Shown in pieces: positions 1 to 6,246 of a stretch of 6,246 nucleotides of DNA; positions within the stretch are counted from its first letter, which is position 1, and every line of letters begins with the position of its first letter. The notes under the pieces are model-generated. The model saw only the letters and a list, made by a program, of their open reading frames with translations, did no database searches and was not told where the DNA came from. The DNA is from Vitrella brassicaformis CCMP3155 (Eukaryota > Protista > Chromerida). Both the position numbers and the translations under genes were made by a program. The stretch covers positions 1-6,246 of the forward strand of contig CDMY01001015.1 of NCBI GenBank assembly GCA_001179505.1. Direction: 5' to 3'.

Positions 1-148
1 AATCTTTGATGAAACCGGACAGAGCAGATAAAATATTGGTGGAGGACCTTCGGTCCGACTCTGAATAAACTACTTTATAGCCAACTGTCTAAATTCTCCG
101 TTGCAAGCAACTCCGAATTAGAACAGTTGGCGAAATATTTAGGTAGTG
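1..148. repeat. Left terminal inverted repeat (148 bp) with internal hairpins
   Basis: Base-by-base reverse complement of 5941-6088; identity stops at 149/5940. Bases 1-70 are also the exact reverse complement of 6177-6246, so the first and last bases of the window pair. Confidence 0.97.
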
Positions 149-303
149 GCAACAAAGTGAGTAGTTTAGTATGTGTTGTTTGAGTGGACGGATGACTTTA
201 AGAGGTTGCCTGACTGCGTGCTACGAGTTTATTCTCGGTGGGAGGGACCTGTGTGTTTTACGGATTTGCACCACTACAGTTATATGTTGGTTCTTTGAAA
301 TTC

Positions 304-1287
304 TTAACTTATGTAGAGAAAATCAATGAGAACCCATAATAATTCAACAAAATGCCAATATGTGGATTGTAGTATAAAATTTGTATTTTGAGGTATTAAT
401 ATTACCTTGAAACCAAAATAATAATTTAAAATAATAAAATTATAAATTAAATATAATGAATTAATATTTATTATTAATAATATTATATGACTTATAATAT
501 AATGATATAAATGTATTATTATATTTATTAATAATTTTATAACAATAATATTTATATTTATATAATAATAAATAAAATTAAAATATTCTATATATAATAA
601 AAATATAAATTTATTAGTTATTTTATTTATTTTATTTTTATTTATATTATATAATAAATATATAAATAGAAATAATTTTATATATTTATTATTTATTATT
701 TCTTTTATATTATATATATTTAATAATTTATATATTATTATTATTTTATATATATTATTAATAATATTTCCTATTAATGAATTATATATAATTGTTAATA
801 ATATAAATATTAAAAATTCTGATATTATAAATAATATTATAAGATCCCAAAATGATAATAATAATAATACAAATGTAATAATAAATTCTATTCTTATTTC
901 TATAATAAAATTATTATTTATTGATATATATAATAAATATATAATATAAAATAATAAATTATAAATTATATATATATTATTAATTATTGATTTTGTAAAT
1001 AAATAAGATCCTAAATAATATTTATTAATCCTAAGATCTTTTGATCTTGAAATAATCCTGAGATCTTTGTTTTCTTTTACTTCTTTATGAAGAGTCTCTT
1101 CTGTCTTACAAGATATTTCTATGCATTGAGAGATAATATTATAGCGAGCTTGAATGCTATGACTTTTATGATCAGATGCCAGTGAACGAGTAAATATTTC
1201 ATACAAGTAACAACTAAGCATCCTAGCGCACCATCTTCGCACGCGACCCTTAGAAAAGAGCGCACTTATTGCACCTTGAGAAAGCAA
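304..1287 (-). CDS. cox3: Cytochrome c oxidase subunit 3, mitochondrial, myzozoan type; true start uncertain (homology begins ~1035-1056, only ATG at 1221)
   Basis: Cox3 motifs in the correct order and spacing: ILFIISE, EY, HxxH (HLYH), and C-terminal FGFKVILIPQ..YWHFVELLWVLIDFLY. The last resembles the apicomplexan form (FG...IP...YWHFVEIVWLYIEFLFY as recalled) more than the animal/fungal YWHFVDVVW. TAA stop at 306-304; Trp in YWHF is encoded by TGG. Confidence 0.9.
   Translation of the reverse strand: MLSQGAISALFSKGRVRRWCARMLSCYLYEIFTRSLASDHKSHSIQARYNIISQCIEISCKTEETLHKEVKENKDLRIISRSKDLRINKYYLGSYLFTKSIINNIYIIYNLLFYIIYLLYISINNNFIIEIRIEFIITFVLLLLSFWDLIILFIISEFLIFILLTIIYNSLIGNIINNIYKIIIIYKLLNIYNIKEIINNKYIKLFLFIYLLYNINKNKINKITNKFIFLLYIEYFNFIYYYININIIVIKLLINIIIHLYHYIISHIILLIININSLYLIYNFIILNYYFGFKVILIPQNTNFILQSTYWHFVELLWVLIDFLYIS
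1026..1068. repeat. Imperfect 16-bp direct repeat with 27-bp (9-codon) spacing at the cox3 5' boundary
   Basis: taatcctaagatcttt (1026-1041) vs taatcctgagatcttt (1053-1068), one mismatch; gives KDLRI twice in the protein. Confidence 0.85.
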
Positions 1288-1364
1288 GCTTAACTCTTGG
1301 TCTTTATGGCTTCGATTTAGCGCACTTGTTACTGCAAGCGGACAGTTGCTGTAAAAGCTATTAT

Positions 1365-1383
1365 GTAACCTCCAGGCAAAGAA
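1365..1383 (-). rRNA. Short SSU rRNA-fragment-like stretch
   Basis: Minus strand reads TTCTTTGCCTGGAGGTTAC, matching my recollection of a Plasmodium mitochondrial SSU fragment (equivalent to bacterial GCCTGGGGAGTAC). Only 19 nt; the flanks do not continue the match. Confidence 0.35.
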
Positions 1384-1454
1384 CCTAAATATTTCGCCAA
1401 CTGTTCTAATTCGGAGTAAATCCGAAGGATTTATGGAGAATTTGGAACAGTTGG
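1383..1454 (+). repeat. Internal copy of the terminal hairpin element with an alternative apical stem
   Basis: 1383-1417 is identical to 5945-5979 (35 bp) and inverted to 110-144. ccaactgttc (1397-1406) pairs with gaacagttgg (1445-1454); taaatcc-GAA-ggattta at 1417-1433. Confidence 0.93.
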
Positions 1455-1478
1455 TTTATTCATCGTCTTAACCCGGCT
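1444..1478 (-). rRNA. Short LSU rRNA-fragment-like stretch (LSUG-type region)
   Basis: Minus strand AGCCGGGTTAAGACG...AACTGTTCC resembles recalled apicomplexan AGCTGGGTTAAGAACG...AGTTTGTTCC (bacterial GAGCTGGGTTTAGAACG). Short and degenerate. Confidence 0.3.
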
Positions 1479-1488
1479 TGTCGCGTGT

Positions 1489-1509
1489 TAAGACTCTTCA
1501 TAAACAGAA
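1489..1509 (+). repeat. 21-bp dispersed direct repeat (second copy 5754-5774; 14-bp inverted core at 1084-1097)
   Basis: taagactcttcataaacagaa read at both positions. Confidence 0.92.
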
Positions 1510-1773
1510 CTAATGTGACATGCGTAAGGTATTTCATATTTCTAATTTCGATATCAAATAATGTGGATTGTGTGAAACCGTTGTTCCGTTCACTACCGTA
1601 CAAAGAATTGCTCCAGGATTAATACATGGCTGTGAACTCAAACAAAGACGAGTGTGTCAGGATTTGATGTTACAAAGTTGCTGCCAAGATTTTACTCTTG
1701 GAACTCAACTTTTACTTTGCATCTTTCAAGGTAAGAAGGTAAAGTTGGAGCCACAGGTTGTGATATAATTATT

Positions 1774-1999
1774 TTGGTATTTTATTGATTTTATATTTAA
1801 TTCGTAAAATCCTGAAATAATTAATATTAATACAAATACAATATTATTATATCAACATATTATCTATCTATTCACACACTACTGTGGCGGTCCAGGTTAC
1901 GTCTTGCACTGTGTAGGTTATAAGAGCCAGCAGTAAAAGTTGTCATTTTGAATCAACAACTTTATAACCAAAATAATTAAATTGGTATTTTATTGATTT
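1774..1999 (+). repeat. 18-bp direct repeat (1774-1791, 1982-1999)
   Basis: ttggtattttattgattt at both positions; 12-nt partial copy at 4707-4718. Confidence 0.88.
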
Positions 2000-2196
2000 A
2001 GTTGTAAAATTGTTTATTTCTAATATAAGTAAAATAATTCTAATCATACATAGATATTTTGGTGCCGCAGCTGCTCGGTCGTAAATCCTATTGTGGAGAA
2101 TTCTTTATGTTATTAATTGATATAAATATAATAATACATATTTATTAGTTCTTGCTGTAAAACTGAAGTTGGAATTGTATTTCTTATAAGATAAAC

Positions 2197-2215
2197 AGAA
2201 TTAACCGTCGTTTTG
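2197..2215 (+). repeat. 19-bp dispersed repeat, one mismatch (second copy 3268-3286)
   Basis: agaattaaccgtcgttttg vs agaattaaccgtcattttg. Confidence 0.88.
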
Positions 2216-2773
2216 AACCGCGACTTTCAAATCCTGTTTTACCGTTAGATCCAATAATTGTTGATTCCACGCTGTGAACTTTGACATCCAGGATTTACAG
2301 CTCTAGAGTTGCGAGTTTATAATATTATTGATATATTATTGATTATAAATAATGAATATATATATGGATTATAATATTCTCTATATAACCTACACAGCAC
2401 GTGCAAGGTCTTGTATCAGATCGATTGTGGACAGATTGACCGATTGTGGAGAATTTCTGTTGTTGGAAATATTTCTAATAATTCATATATTGATATAATT
2501 ATAAGAAGTTTAGTTCGAGATTAATTGAACAATTGCAGGATTTTACGCTACGATCGTGGAACTGCTGTCTGTCCAACCTGACGGATAATTCTGTCTTCAT
2601 TAATAAATATGAAATTAATAAAATTATTTATCATTAATGGAAAATAGAAATATTATTATGGTCACTAATAACTCAATTTATAGAATTTGTTGTTTTAATA
2701 TTAAATTTATGGAAAATAGAATTTATAATAATAATTAATTGAATGCTTATTTCTATGTTATTAGAGATGTATA

Positions 2774-2792
2774 ATTATATTGGTATTATTAT
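2774..2792 (+). repeat. 19-bp dispersed repeat (second copy 4323-4341)
   Basis: attatattggtattattat at both positions. Confidence 0.85.
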
Positions 2793-3030
2793 GGCTTATT
2801 GAAGGTAAAGTTGTAATTTTATATATTAATATTCAAAACACTGCTTTCACTTTCAACTTTGAGTTCGTCATGTCACAATTGTAAGAATATGCACTTGGTT
2901 CTGTTTATCCTAGGTTGAGAGACACTTCATAAATGCCAAGCTGTGGAAATCGATGTTGCAAAATTGCTCTGGAAAATATTTCAACTTAATGGAATTTAAG
3001 ACATTAGTGTCGTAGCGTAAAGTCTGTCCA

Positions 3031-3140
3031 CAACAGTAAATCTTAAGATAATGATAAATTTGAATTCGTTAGAAAGATACATCAAAATGCAAATATCCGG
3101 CGCAGCCTAACGGTAAAACAGCAGTCCAACAGTAAATCTT
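3031..3140 (+). repeat. 14-bp direct repeat (3031-3044, 3127-3140)
   Basis: caacagtaaatctt twice; 10-nt core caacagtaaa again at 4548-4557. Confidence 0.85.
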
Positions 3141-3845
3141 CACTTGCTACGTTGAAAGACCAGATCCACCACATAGCCTCTAAACGCCAACTTCTGTTGT
3201 TACCCTTCATAGCAAGATTATCACCAATTAAGTTCGATTAATAAAATCCTTGATTTATTCAATTCTTAGAATTAACCGTCATTTTGGGCAGCTCTTACTA
3301 CCAGGATAATAGTGAGGTCACATCTGGATCTTGGAGAATCTTGGCAAACAGAAATAATTATGAAGGATCACAACATGACCATTATTGTTGGACAGCTGCA
3401 GGTCTCAAGTGTGAATGGTAATAGAAGACCTGTAATACCATACTCATTCAATATTTGGTATAATTTGATATTAAATTAATTATAAGTAAAATATTAAAAT
3501 ACCTAAATATAAATATTGTATCTTTAGAATCAATTAATGAAATCCCAGACAAAACTGCTTCCAAAGGCTGTCGGTTCAATGTGACCTTGAAACCAGAATA
3601 ATTTAATTATTTCACTTCTTACTAATAAAGCAAGATTATCCGGAAGGTGCCAGGTTACGTAGAGATCCACCAGCAAGGTCTCTATCAATGGAGATTAATC
3701 GAACTGGATTCACACACAACTTCTGTTCAGAGCGGCTTATAAGATCTTGCAGCAATAATATTATAATTATTTTGTGTTGAGTTTATAGAGAACCAAGAAT
3801 TCGCCCTCTTTGGAGCCAGATCTCAACTTTTACTCTCAAGCCGTA

Positions 3846-4183
3846 AATCCAGAATTAATAATGGAATATTTTATATCGATATTATTATTGACAGTTGAGA
3901 CTGCACCGTTACCACTCTACCTCCATATATATAAGAAGTGGCAGCAAGATAGATATTTCAAAGTGGCAATTGACACACGATTTCCTGGAGTTCGGTTTTC
4001 ACTCAACAGAAATAATTCCAGGTTTTATCGATGTAGCTGTAAAATCGATATAATTATGCAAGGTTAATAGATATCCATTATGTTGCATGTTTGACAGCCA
4101 GCCTAAACAAAGCGTCTATTAAACCAGGCATTTAATTCAGTATTTATTATTACCTTGCAACATCAAAACTACATATTAATACA
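3846..4183 (+). pseudogene. Possible heavily degraded cox1-derived segment
   Basis: Short cox1-like pieces in roughly cox1 order but different frames: RINN/ISILLL (~3850-3890), VAV..DII (~4030-4055), SIM (~4074-4082), LHINT (4169-4183; cox1 LHFNT). By eye and from memory only. Confidence 0.2.
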
Positions 4184-5940
4184 GCAAATTCCATCAACAC
4201 CTTTATCACCACGATCGGAGAACGAAGTAGATCGAGAGTCAGATGTCACTAGTTAACCGTTACCTTTATTACCAGATTGAGAGTTTATTCATTATTAGTA
4301 AGCAAGTTAAAACCGAGATATTATTATATTGGTATTATTATATCATTAATATTATTATCCATTAATAGCAAACAAAGTTCAATTCATGATATTATTGATT
4401 CAATCTTTGGAAGTGGCAGTTGTCGATCGAGATATGACATCCTTCATTTAATCAACAATTGTTGGAAATGCTTTATTTATAAGGGAATGCAATTTTAATG
4501 CAATTAACGGCGATAGCTAGTTTCTCACAGAACACAGACTTGAGAGTCAACAGTAAAACAAGAATTGGTTTCATGGCCAGATTATCCGCCATTAGTGAAC
4601 CTTGACAATTGACAGCGTGAACCGACAGTCAAATATGAACGGCAACTTCCAGGTTTTGTCTTTCATTTCATAAATTCCATTTTATTAAGAATTATAAATA
4701 TTTAGGATTTTATTGATTGTTATAAAATTACATATAATTATAATTCACTATTAACAGCTCTCAAGCCTCAAGTTGTGTTTCCTATTAATGGAGCAGATTT
4801 TACCGATCGGCGGAAATCGAGTTCATAAAATCCTGTCAAACGGAACTCTTGTTGCTATTATCTGCCACGATGTTGCTGTTGTGTACTTGCTGGGTAATAG
4901 AGGTAACCAGGCAACCGTCAACAATCGAGCTCGGCAAATCAACAGCTTATAATTATTTGAGGTTTAAGTTGAGTTTGGTGTTATTAGTAAGATTAATACA
5001 ATTCTTGGTTCTCTATTACCATATAAATATTTTACTTATAATATAATTGATATAATTTTAGATTAAATTATTATAAGAATTAATTTTATCAACACCAATT
5101 TATGTTGTCACTTGTTCACGGCAGGAAGTATTAACCTTGCCAGATTTACCGATGCGCCGGATCGCGGGCTGTTATAAGTAAAATCAAAACAAAGCAACTT
5201 TGCAACTCAATTTACAAGATCATAGCAATAAATCCACAATGGCGGAATATTTCTACTTTCTAAGATCGAAGGCTGGAGGTCATGAATCAGGTTTCCATTC
5301 ACTTCCTTCATTAGTTGTATCTTTCAACTGGACATAGTATTAATAGAACTGGAGTTGCAAACTTGCTGTACAGAATGAACCAAGATTTATTGATCTGGTT
5401 TTACGATCAACAGAAATTATTCATATTCAAAAGCCAAGTTGACAGATCACGGCTTTAAATGGTATTTGACGATCGTGGTGTGGAACTCGATTTATCGGTA
5501 CAACCGTTGTGTGGAATTTGTGTTATTATTAGATTTACTGCTGCAAAGACTTTCCACAGCCAGAGTCAACAGCAACATCAACAACTTGGCTCCATTATTA
5601 CCGTTATGTAGAGATTCTCCAGGCTGGAATACTCGCCAAGTCCGCGGCGGAGCCTTGTCAAAGAAAACCGGAATGCAAGGTTCTTGGTTTCCTACGTTTG
5701 TTGAATCGGTAATATCAACATAGGCACGCAATAGTCCGGAAGGTTTATTTCGATAAGACTCTTCATAAACAGAAGCCTAAGAGCTGTGTGAACTATAAAC
5801 CTAGTGATCTAACTTACCTAACGGAAACAATAAAAGTCCGAACCATGGCATCTTGAAATATTCTTGGTTAATTCGTAGTTAGCGGTTAAAGGTCAATCAA
5901 ACAGGTAATAACAACGGTTAAACATGACATCCATTTCGTA

Positions 5941-6088
5941 CACTACCTAAATATTTCGCCAACTGTTCTAATTCGGAGTTGCTTGCAACGGAGAATTTAG
6001 ACAGTTGGCTATAAAGTAGTTTATTCAGAGTCGGACCGAAGGTCCTCCACCAATATTTTATCTGCTCTGTCCGGTTTCATCAAAGATT
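5941..6088. repeat. Right inverted repeat, full 148-bp copy
   Basis: Exact reverse complement of 1-148. Confidence 0.97.
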
Positions 6089-6113
6089 GAAACCTTCCAG
6101 AGCGACTTTTAAG

Positions 6114-6246
6114 ACCTAAATATTTCGCCAACTGTTCTAATTCAAGATTTAACGCTACGAGTGGAAACGAGTAGCGGTTTATTCAGAGTCGGACCGAAGG
6201 TCCTCCACCAATATTTTATCTGCTCTGTCCGGTTTCATCAAAGATT
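6114..6246. repeat. Second, variant terminal unit in tandem with the first
   Basis: 6114-6143 equals 5945-5974 (30 bp); 6177-6246 equals 6019-6088 (70 bp); the middle 6144-6176 is different sequence. Confidence 0.95.
6153..6176 (+). other. Small hairpin with tandem GA mismatches and GGAA loop
   Basis: cgctac-GA-gt-GGAA-ac-GA-gtagcg. Confidence 0.65.

Follow-up and report, generated by a model that had tools for sequence, protein, structure and literature searches.

The window, by which the whole analysed stretch of 6,246 nucleotides is meant, contains a single protein gene, a putative cox3, and at least one rRNA fragment gene, since a match to 23S rRNA lies inside a block that is 94% identical in related contigs. 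The features are as follows, with the strand where one was assigned.

1-70: T70, the outermost repeat element, with inverted copies at 6019-6088 and 6177-6246 (repeat search)
71-148: subterminal part of the left inverted repeat, with a long imperfect hairpin (80-131) and M2 inverted at 110-144
304-1086, minus strand: putative cox3, with a TAA stop at 304-306 and the CDS from 307 to about 1029 (homologues and C-terminal motif)
1366-1599: shared gene-upstream block, with M3 (1366-1383), M2 (1383-1417), hairpins (1396-1455, 1465-1494) and M1 (1478-1517), followed as far as 1599 by a conserved extension
1600-5750: unique sequence of about 4.1 kb without a long ORF, 33% G+C, with A+T-rich islands
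5754-5774, plus strand: partial M1 copy of 21 nt, identical to 1489-1509 (repeat comparison within the window)
5774-5941, plus strand: LSU rRNA fragment gene, LSUA-like, domain II, with the core match at 5804-5927 (nhmmer)
5941-6088: unit A, the right arm of the 148-nt inverted repeat, with M2 (5945-5979), a hairpin and T70
6089-6246: unit B, a second, variant repeat unit, with an M3-like start (6089-6113), M2' (6114-6157), a small hairpin and T70 (6177-6246)

The cox3 ORF is the only long ORF of the window, both under the standard code and with TGA read as Trp. Its probable start is an ATT at 1027-1029, giving 241 codons, with the CDS start estimated at about 1029-1086, and the frame stays open further upstream, to 1287/1455. 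The G+C content is 9.9% (about 90% A+T). A mean of 29 stops would be expected in this frame (5000 shuffles), whereas none is observed, compared to 15-43 in the other five frames; the ORF is a real coding sequence. There are no TGA codons, Trp is encoded by TGG only despite the A+T content of 90%, and the stop is TAA, as in the standard code. Since the ORF is intact where about 29 stops are expected, the gene appears to be under purifying selection.

The evidence that this ORF encodes a very divergent cox3 is weak but specific. A Pfam search gave no COX3 match, and a plain PDB search did not recognise the ORF as COX3. Among 1.84 billion representative proteins, its sole match was P0001, which equals the ORF on the related contig L002; the homologues P0001/L002/L012 match the window ORF over its full length, with 40% identity over 270 AA (E 9e-21). 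When a cox3 profile was compared to the PDB, the sole match was a Cox3 chain (E 0.31) with the C-terminal motif aligned in register, and hhalign aligned the same motif to E. coli CyoC with low probability and over 19 columns only. All matches to Cox3 or CyoC are confined to this motif, and the AF2 model of the protein is poor (pLDDT 50). The missing Pfam match, the E-value of just 0.31 and the short hhalign alignment would also suit another or a novel hydrophobic mitochondrial protein. Such a protein is unlikely, as the matching motif is the C-terminal signature of the Cox3 family and lies at an equal distance from the C-terminus in the PDB and CyoC comparisons. A second stretch of the ORF, of the ILFIISE type and at the expected position, may be Cox3-like too, as judged by eye. 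In addition, about 241 codons equals the length of the apicomplexan COIII alignment (PMC13358168), and the ORF would be the third protein gene beside cox1 and cob in a lineage expected to hold exactly cox1, cob and cox3.

The preliminary description regarded cox3 as the only intact gene. This is correct for protein genes, but the region 5804-5927 on the plus strand matches E. coli 23S rRNA 727-799 (E 7.5e-4, nhmmer with the window alone). The same LSUA-like block is present in L006 and L007, where it matches 23S 724-831 (E 4e-4 and 1e-3), and the block 5774-5971 is 94% identical to both over 168-201 nt. The Plasmodium fragment from domain II is LSUA (PMC3382252). Neither tRNA genes nor fragments of cox1 or cob were found in the window, and its other ORFs gave no credible Pfam match.

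Both ends had initially been described as exact reverse complements. The repeat search of the window confirmed this for bases 1-70 and 6177-6246 (70 nt, 100%) and for the longer arms 1-148 and 5941-6088 (148 nt, 100% complementary). As both pairs of arms are exact, the right end consists of two tandem repeat units. T70 is also a direct repeat (6019-6088 and 6177-6246, spacing 158). However, the repeat is not strictly terminal: the T70 copy at 6019-6088 runs on into further sequence, namely a module conserved in the relatives. The two extreme ends of the window halt at the identical base of T70, for which chance is negligible. T70 contains a small hairpin of the GGACC-TTCG-GGTCC type, and the segment 1-148 has a folding z of -3.3, with 0 of 200 shuffles equally stable. 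The inverted ends are copies of one module family, in which a unit comprises an M3-like part, M2, a hairpin and T70; the right end has two such units in tandem, the left end a single one.

Related contigs were detected by scanning metagenomes with a 20-mer from the M1 copy at 5754-5774, which yielded 13 loci. The modules M1, M2 and M3 are common to the window and these loci at 93-100% identity. M1 (40 nt) is 100% identical in 13 of 13 loci, M2 (window 110-144) is 93-100% identical in L001, L003-L006 and L010-L012, and M2', together with the extension on its 3' side, recurs at 93-98% identity in L003, L004, L006, L010, L011 and L012. A stretch of 19-20 nt at 6088-6107 is identical in L012 and L013 and adjoins M1 there. 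The upstream block 1366-1599, with a folding z of -5.9, is matched by L005 at 1382-1519 (E 4e-15) and by L004 and L001 at 1475-1599. In the relatives, M1 and M3 lie in antisense orientation ahead of cox1, cob and cox3, and M1 continues an LSUD-like rRNA fragment (E. coli 23S 1927-2008). Further pieces of fragmented rRNA in these contigs are LSUG-like (E 7e-6), LSUF-like (E 1e-4) and LSUD-like (E 2e-3), together with the SSU 530 loop and the SSU 3' end. Since the cox3 proteins are only about 40% identical, the contigs belong to a relative and not to the genome of the window.

In the single metagenome assembly JAAUXU, cox1 of a related organism lies on L011 (4361 nt), cob on L013 (4591 nt) and cox3 on L002 (1252 nt), with one protein gene each, and all three contigs carry the window modules M2 (110-144), M1 (1478-1517) and M3 (1366-1383). 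This agrees with the earlier proposal of a multipartite genome with one gene per molecule, except that the rRNA fragment at 5804-5927 had been overlooked. The accompanying expectation that cox1 and cob molecules share the ends of the window was borne out for the modules, on the contigs of the relative, but not for the outermost 70 nt. T70 is absent from 13 of 13 related loci and from every collection scanned, a 22-mer from it had no match in the viral or metagenome collections scanned, and only its inner 18 nt or so resemble the relatives.

The best named matches of the relatives' cox1 and cob are those of Klossia helicina, with 57% and 48% identity. The related cox1 falls into a seven-member clade with Klossia (support 1.0, in a midpoint-rooted tree with long branches and one named taxon), and cox1 and cob group with this apicomplexan, not with the bulk of the marine matches. 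Together with the fragmented rRNA, this supports the original assignment to a mitochondrial genome of apicomplexan, dinoflagellate or chromerid type. The window is therefore probably mitochondrial DNA of an uncultured myzozoan with an expanded and fragmented mitogenome; among named taxa, adeleorinid apicomplexans such as Klossia would be closest to it.

Lineages outside the myzozoans, such as euglenids or Amoebidium-like ichthyosporeans, have linear mitochondrial chromosomes that carry one gene each and have terminal repeats in common. Euglena gracilis offers an analogy, with linear chromosomes bearing single genes, pseudogene copies and terminal repeats (PMC8130358), and with a cox3 that is likewise highly divergent (PMC4700960). 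Nevertheless, an origin in such a lineage is highly improbable. The window cox3 uses TGG for Trp and lacks TGA, as opposed to TGA=Trp in euglenozoans (PMC8130358), Klossia is closest to the relatives' cox1 and cob, and the rRNA is divided into small LSUA/D/F/G-type pieces typical of myzozoans. Genes for nad, cox2 or atp6 were not found on any related contig, whereas Euglena, an unrelated lineage, has these genes and rRNAs in halves instead of many small pieces (PMC8130358, PMC4700960).

The roughly 4.1 kb between cox3 and the LSUA-like fragment is unique and non-coding. The region 1600-5750 has no ORF of more than 109 codons, no Rfam match, no credible Pfam match, no match in plasmids or phages and no folding signal. 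It shows no similarity to the related loci, nor to their rRNA fragments beyond that of shuffles. The sharp contrast in composition between cox3 (9.9% G+C) and this interior (33%), for which no homologue or function was detected, could point to a NUMT or to a chimera joining mitochondrial pieces to unrelated DNA. This is distinctly unlikely, as the ORF has remained intact, and hence under selection, despite about 29 expected stops, and mitochondrial modules flank the interior on both sides, with the rRNA fragment on the right. Moreover, the relatives' contigs with cox1, cob and rRNA also hold 2-3 kb of unique, ORF-free DNA with 30-44% G+C, and because of this, long non-coding stretches seem native to such mitogenomes.

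As a separate observation, an apparently functionless interior of 33% G+C is hard to square with the A+T pressure in cox3, which counts against the main reading.

Whether the contig is a complete, discrete linear chromosome has roughly even chances. The competing explanation, to which slightly less than an even chance is given, is that the contig represents an assembly path, bounded by repeats, within a mitogenome that is larger or recombines strongly, in the style of Toxoplasma, Symbiodinium or Chromera; the assembler would have halted in a dispersed repeat present in both orientations. The inverted ends may thus mark assembly breaks rather than telomeres, because T70 was found nowhere else, one of its copies is internal and followed by further conserved sequence, and the relatives' contigs end in repeat modules, with M1 inverted at both ends of L013. 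Arbitrary termination in a repeat array would also account for the two units at the right end as against a single one at the left. The related contigs are mosaics of shared blocks (e.g. L012 2252-2353 equals L013 4366-4265, 100%, inverted), and their sizes are not fixed, as the same cox1 is found on a 7222-nt contig and on the 4361-nt L011. For a discrete chromosome, on the other hand, it can be stated that both ends halt at the exact same T70 base, as would be expected if the assembly graph truly ended there, that the assembler resolved both the 148-nt repeat and the three copies of T70 and so must have had spanning information, and that piroplasms are an established case of linear mtDNA with inverted repeats at its termini (PMC3546061, PMC11950482).

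Under the preferred reading of an expanded, fragmented myzozoan mitogenome, each of the three protein genes would have a segment of a few kb to itself and be bracketed by a small common set of modules. Pieces of fragmented rRNA genes may be the origin of some of these modules (M1, from the LSUD/LSUE junction), and long hairpins that of others (M2). The cox3 gene on the minus strand would be transcribed toward the left end and the LSUA-like fragment on the plus strand toward the right end, and the M1/M3 block that the three genes share on their upstream side may act as a common signal for transcription or RNA processing. As the genes diverge, homologous recombination and gene conversion among dispersed modules would preserve the near-identity of the modules. 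These processes would also give rise to inverted and tandem arrangements, and they could provide linear molecules with caps as well as reshuffle segments. The gene segment could be inverted by way of the 35-nt inverted M2 pair around cox3 (110-144, 1383-1417). Dinoflagellates, chromerids and Toxoplasma are known to have mitogenomes that are expanded and recombine (PMC8554336), and for linear mtDNAs, gene conversion at their ends has been described (PMC3673629).

The monomeric linear mtDNA of piroplasms (Babesia, Theileria), including the flip-flop type of B. microti, resembles the window in its size of about 6 kb, apparent linearity, inverted repeats at both ends (PMC3546061, PMC11950482, PMC11598858), cox3, LSU rRNA fragment genes near the ends, lack of tRNAs and internal inverted repeats that could invert segments. 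However, piroplasm genomes are compact and carry all three protein genes and rRNA fragments, whereas the window contains a single protein gene and a single recognisable rRNA fragment beside some 4.1 kb that is non-coding, and its inverted repeat is built of modules that also occur internally and beside other genes. Dinoflagellate and chromerid mitogenomes share the many, probably linear pieces of a few kb, genes in several sequence contexts, abundant non-coding DNA (PMC8554336, PMC2151934, PMC3268668, PMC4558855), stem-loops, inverted repeats, fragmented rRNA and a coding capacity of only cox1, cob and cox3. In contrast to these, the genes here end in TAA, the window cox3 is contiguous without trans-splicing or a stop-less ORF, there are no cob-cox3, cox3-cox1 or cob-cox1 fusions, and the relatives' cox1 and cob have the apicomplexan affinity given above. 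In Toxoplasma and Neospora, also of the apicomplexan lineage, 21 sequence blocks are reshuffled (PMC8554336, PMC8092007), comparable to the related contigs as mosaics of a few reused blocks, several of which are rRNA fragments. Unlike in Toxoplasma, where protein genes are split over blocks, cox1, cob and cox3 are intact here, reuse concerns short flanking modules of 20-200 nt, and most of each contig is unique.

Among the adeleorinids, Klossia, the closest named source of cox1 and cob, differs in having a compact, circular-mapping genome of 6.7 kb, whose single map comprises three CDS as well as 35-37 rRNA fragments (PMC13358168), and the amino acid identity to the relatives is only 48-57%. 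For Hepatozoon canis, 'multiple mitochondrion-associated sequences' are reported, and this species may be without a single complete mtDNA (PMC13358168). Klossia also has near-perfect repeats upstream of and into CytB and COIII (PMC13358168), which recalls the shared upstream block described here.

The only long ORF of the window, read with the standard code or with TGA as Trp, lies on the minus strand at 307-1287 from the first start-like codon, and its frame is open to 1455. The frame contains no stops, compared with 15-43 in the other five frames; in 5000 shuffles the mean was 29 and none had zero, which identifies the ORF as a maintained coding sequence. Its last 260 codons have a G+C content of 9.9% (GC3 5%) versus 34% in the rest of the window. 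A Pfam search of the ORF gave no match at E <= 1, COX3 (PF00510) included, which is likely due to this extreme composition. A plain PDB sequence search found no COX3 match either, and a word-index protein search, swamped by low-complexity words, returned none. In an exhaustive HMMER search against 1.84 billion representative proteins, a single match was obtained (P0001, E 4e-7), with 69% identity in the C-terminal 35 residues. The contig encoding P0001 was identified, indirectly, as the related metagenome contig L002.

The assignment of the ORF therefore had to be based on profiles and relatives. Searched against the PDB, a profile of the ORF and its homologues (alignment A1) had a single match at E <= 10, a cytochrome c oxidase subunit 3, which was aligned in register at the C-terminal signature. 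The hhalign comparison with E. coli CyoC aligned the same motif, at an equal distance from the C-terminus. This signature, WHFV(D/E)xxW, is present at the C-terminus of the hydrophobic ORF product of about 250 amino acids, and ORFs of related contigs are 40% identical to it across 270 residues (E 9e-21). Because of the PDB profile match, the CyoC motif, the homologous ORFs and the fact that the other two protein genes of the related contig set are cox1 and cob, the ORF is identified as cox3. By eye, an ILFIISE-type stretch appears to lie where Cox3 has its conserved glutamate helix. An AF2 model from a 4-row alignment was all-helical, with a pLDDT of 49.7, too poor to judge the seven-helix membrane fold of the COX3 family.

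The alignment with relatives suggests that translation starts at an ATT at 1029-1027, giving 241 codons; the gene has no internal ATG and stops with TAA at 306-304. In the related organism the G+C content is 33% for cox1, 28% for cob and 22% for cox3, so the extreme A+T drift is specific to cox3 in the window's species. At about 10% G+C, this gene shows what degree of drift a respiratory gene can undergo while its frame stays open. That standard profile searches miss it is a warning for the annotation of environmental mitogenomes. Antisense to cox3, at 572-946 (+), a stop-free frame of 125 codons lies in sequence of 95% A+T; it has no homologue, its Pfam match being sub-threshold (E 0.06), and the frame is probably a by-product of cox3 codon usage.

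The perfect inverted repeats reported for both ends in the preliminary description were confirmed at contig level by repeat search. According to this search and self-BLAST, 1-148 is the exact reverse complement of 5941-6088, and 1-70, the outermost element T70, that of 6177-6246. T70 is also a direct repeat (6019-6088 and 6177-6246), so the right end consists of two tandem, non-identical units and the left end of one. Both contig ends stop at the same T70 base.

Repeat units and further short modules (M1, M2, M3) of the window
110-144: M2, 35 nt, inverted
1366-1383: M3
1383-1417: M2
1478-1517: M1
5754-5774: 21-nt piece of M1
5941-6088: repeat unit A
5945-5979: M2
6089-6246: repeat unit B
6114-6143: M2

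The inner 18 nt of T70 parallel the internal block 1383-1517. The order of modules in the terminal unit, namely M2, a hairpin, 'TTTATTCA', a second hairpin and an A-rich tail, parallels the same block. Unit B opens with a sequence like the short module M3, and its first 19-20 nt (6088-6107) are identical in the related contigs L012 and L013, where they stand beside M1. Together, these parallels make the terminal units paralogues of the gene-flanking block. The outer edge of T70 is a module junction, and since the sequence runs on past 6088/6089, T70 is not intrinsically terminal. Folding gave z-scores of -3.3 for 1-148 and -5.9 for 1383-1517, and long hairpins of the window have M2 as their 5' arm. 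No exact match was found for a T70 22-mer in viral or metagenome contigs, or for an M2 26-mer in viral contigs.

Relatives were identified by scanning metagenome contigs with a 20-mer common to both M1 copies, and this sample therefore consists of M1-bearing contigs. The scan returned 13 loci from six WGS sets (JAAUXU, JAAUXY, JAAUYB, JAAUYE, JAAUYK, JAAUYM). M1 is 97-100% identical across about 40 nt in all 13; M2, or its unit-B variant M2', occurs in most of them at 93-100% identity and M3 in several, and T70 is absent from all. Two loci (L006, L007) match window 5774-5971 at 94%. The M1 20-mer had no match in viral contigs, and a cox1-based locus search of viral contigs was likewise negative. 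In 596 Gb of prokaryotic genomes the M1 20-mer had one exact match, in a gammaproteobacterial MAG (L015, CAYNAR010000004.1), where about one is expected by chance and where no similarity extends beyond the 20-mer.

Related contigs with protein genes
L011, 4361 nt, JAAUXU: cox1 alone
L013, 4591 nt, JAAUXU: cob alone
L002, 1252 nt, JAAUXU: cox3
L012, JAAUYM: cox3 copy with an in-frame TAA at 1977-1979, where L002 has GAA

The same antisense block of M1 and M3 lies upstream of cox1, cob and cox3 in the relatives and of cox3 in the window. The related contigs are mosaic: L012 2252-2353 equals L013 4366-4265 at 100% in inverted orientation, and L007 has separate blocks in common with L011 and with L012. 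Given the TAA of L012 versus the GAA of L002, the related organism or population has intact and broken cox3 copies in different contexts. Upstream of the conserved cox3 N-terminus, L012 and L002 diverge completely. In both (L002 61-115, L012 2246-2306), the cox3 frame passes the conserved C-terminus without a stop and enters antisense M1, whereas the window's cox3 has a TAA right after the motif. By analogy with dinoflagellate cox3, the stop of the relative's gene may be made by RNA processing. Contigs of other lengths, one an NCBI contig of 7222 nt and others of 2490 and 1765 nt, encode the cox1 protein of L011 too (cluster P0002).

Fragments of rRNA genes were detected with nhmmer and the E. 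coli rRNAs, and many of the shared blocks proved to be such fragments.

rRNA fragments (contig and position; E. coli counterpart; E-value)
Window 5834-5906 (envelope 5804-5927); 23S 727-799; 7.5e-4
L011 3703-3796; 23S 2528-2620; 7e-6
L007 570-671; 23S 2521-2621; 1e-5
L004 551-645; 23S 2426-2520; 1e-4
L013 22-102; 23S 1927-2008; 2e-3, in a search limited to the 23S 1900-2110 segment
L003 165-247; 23S 1923-2006; 3e-3, in the same limited search
L003 and L010; 16S 530 loop; weak, about 0.08
L004 and L006; 16S 3' end; weak, 0.13-0.43

The window was described at first as having cox3 as its only intact gene. This holds for protein genes, as shown by ORF, Pfam and cox1/cob searches, but the window also has an LSUA-like rRNA fragment, a domain II piece so named in Plasmodium (PMC3382252), which adjoins the right inverted repeat. 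Among the relatives, LSUD-, LSUF- and LSUG-like pieces, the SSU 530 loop and the SSU 3' end are spread over different contigs and strands, and the 23S fragment of L004 bears the target site of the apicomplexan LSUF primer (PMC13358168). In these contigs M1 starts exactly at the end of the LSUD-like fragment and aligns with the next E. coli positions. M1 thus continues this fragment: it is rRNA-gene sequence that has spread to many places by copying. In L004, M2 comes after the SSU 3' end. The repeat modules are therefore partly of rRNA origin.

The best named match of the relatives' cox1 is Klossia helicina (Apicomplexa: Adeleorina) with 57% identity, environmental sequences reaching 63-86%. 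For cob it is Klossia with 48% and 326 bits, followed among named taxa by red algae with at most 236 bits. A FastTree phylogeny of the 120 best cox1 matches unites the L011 protein and Klossia in a clade of seven members (support 1.0), separate from 113 mostly marine-catalogue sequences; the tree is rooted at its midpoint, has long branches and includes one named taxon, and it concerns the relatives' gene, not one of the window. The restriction to cox1, cob and cox3 holds for the window (cox3 only) and for all 13 loci, and no nad, cox2 or atp6 was found on the related contigs. ARAGORN found no tRNA genes in the window. TGA is absent as a Trp codon, with TGG used three times in the window's cox3, six times in the relatives' cox1 and five times in their cob; the latter two genes end in TAA. 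This gene set, the fragmented rRNAs, the lack of tRNAs, the non-ATG starts and the standard Trp codon fit Myzozoa. A euglenid origin, suggested at first by a divergent cox3 and by chromosomes that are linear and carry one gene each, was ruled out by codon usage, the rRNA fragmentation pattern and the cox1 and cob affinity; in euglenids TGA stands for Trp and nad genes are present (PMC8130358).

Most of the window is taken up by its interior (1600-5750, about 4.1 kb), which has 33% G+C with A+T-rich islands. There is no ORF longer than expected by chance, and ten interior ORFs had no credible match in Pfam. A 55-aa ORF at 3312-3476 (+) has a sub-threshold match to a transportin TPR domain (E 2.5e-4, 21.8 bits versus a cut-off of 27), which was taken as chance. 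Searches of the interior with cox1, cob and cox3 (tblastn, for gene fragments), with all related loci (nhmmer) and against plasmids and phages (blastn) were negative. Rfam scans of the whole window and of its two halves at E <= 10 gave only chance-level matches (ALIL pseudoknot, snoRNA and miRNA families). Folding z-scores of the interior showed no signal, and no internal repeat family was found. Guide-RNA or module cassettes of the kinetoplastid or diplonemid kind were dropped as an explanation, as there is no repeat or cassette structure.

Smith-Waterman comparison of the interior with the relatives' rRNA fragments did not exceed shuffles, except for a borderline region at about 3110-3170. 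Here, two short stretches 29 nt apart match the left end of L009 on the reverse strand, a score reached by one of 60 shuffles, and look like the conserved GACGGAAAGACC region of LSU rRNA (E. coli 23S ~2050-2070), possibly the remains of an LSUE-like fragment that has decayed or been interrupted. A stretch at 2061-2086 looks by eye like the SSU 530-loop sequence that is intact in L003 and L010; its alignment score is no better than shuffled, which makes a chance likeness or a badly decayed relic probable. Unique ORF-free stretches of 2-3 kb also lie between the recognisable genes and modules of the related contigs (L004, 3274 nt; L011 1-1895; L013 123-2985). Long non-coding DNA therefore seems typical of the mitogenome of this lineage and not peculiar to the window. 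It is puzzling that these 4.1 kb of 33% G+C stand beside a gene with 5% G+C at third codon positions, that is, with silent sites of 95% A+T.

Whether the window is a discrete chromosome depends on how its ends are read. There is about an even chance that it is a real linear molecule capped by at least one repeat unit, the number of which an assembler could not resolve. The identical stopping base at both ends and the fact that the assembler spanned a 148-nt repeat favour this reading. The alternative that remains is that the genome is larger and recombining and that the assembly path halts within one of its dispersed repeats; this agrees with the internal position of one copy of the terminal element T70 and with the related contigs, which typically end in modules, L013 having M1 inverted at both of its ends. 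The preliminary description of a linear, one-gene minichromosome was largely right in its observations, while its interpretation is supported in part only. It had predicted sister molecules for cox1 and cob with the same ends; the cox1 and cob contigs found, which are those of a relative and not of the window's own genome, have the inner modules M1, M2 and M3 in common with the window but not T70.

A broader and rather doubtful proposal is that the mitogenome of an apicomplexan-related lineage is divided among linear minichromosomes of about 4-7 kb. Each would carry one protein gene and stray rRNA pieces, would consist for the most part of unique non-coding DNA, and would have as its caps inverted arrays of modules from one homogenised family, with rRNA-gene fragments and hairpins as their source. 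Cox3 of the window's species would have been driven to about 10% G+C with the non-coding bulk still at 33%. If true, this difference would imply that the bulk has a function, or that mutation or conversion is strongly biased by region.

Between organisms with cox3 proteins of about 40% identity, and among many copies within an assembly, the modules differ very little. Their near-identity suggests that the copies still undergo gene conversion or recombination, or that the modules are constrained as rRNA pieces or processing signals, and makes them a clean case for the study of concerted evolution or of a function of the modules. We infer a mechanism of recombination and conversion among modules. 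Inverted ends would arise where inverted copies recombine, and terminal units would be made uniform and multiplied by conversion from one end to the other (PMC3673629). The 35-nt inverted M2 pair brackets the cox3 segment, so recombination could flip it, analogous to the flip-flop inversion in Babesia microti mtDNA (PMC3546061). Both recognisable genes of the window are subterminal and point outwards; on a speculative view, transcription or replication might therefore start in the central region.

Apicomplexan mitogenomes are usually described as compact units of about 6 kb or as the block system of Toxoplasma. A lineage that groups with Klossia and has intact genes on separate, mostly non-coding, module-sharing segments would be an intermediate between these states and the dinoflagellate/chromerid state, and would help to judge whether 'scrambled' mitogenomes have arisen more than once. 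The Klossia mitogenomes themselves are compact, circular-mapping and 6.7 kb in size (PMC13358168), so the architecture here is different. The window is like a piroplasm mitogenome in being a unit of about 6 kb with inverted ends, but with only one of the three protein genes and one rRNA fragment it falls outside that type. Gene dispersal, non-coding bulk and repeat modules are shared with dinoflagellate, chromerid and Toxoplasma mitogenomes (PMC8554336). The dinoflagellate type has a trans-spliced cox3, ORFs without canonical stops and extensive RNA editing, whereas cox3 of the window is one contiguous ORF with a TAA stop. In Toxoplasma, protein genes are split across reshuffled blocks, whereas the cox1, cob and cox3 ORFs are intact here (cox1 and cob in the relatives). 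Having contiguous genes with canonical stops, the window belongs to neither of these two types; it joins a piroplasm-like unit with the dispersal known from dinoflagellates, chromerids and Toxoplasma.
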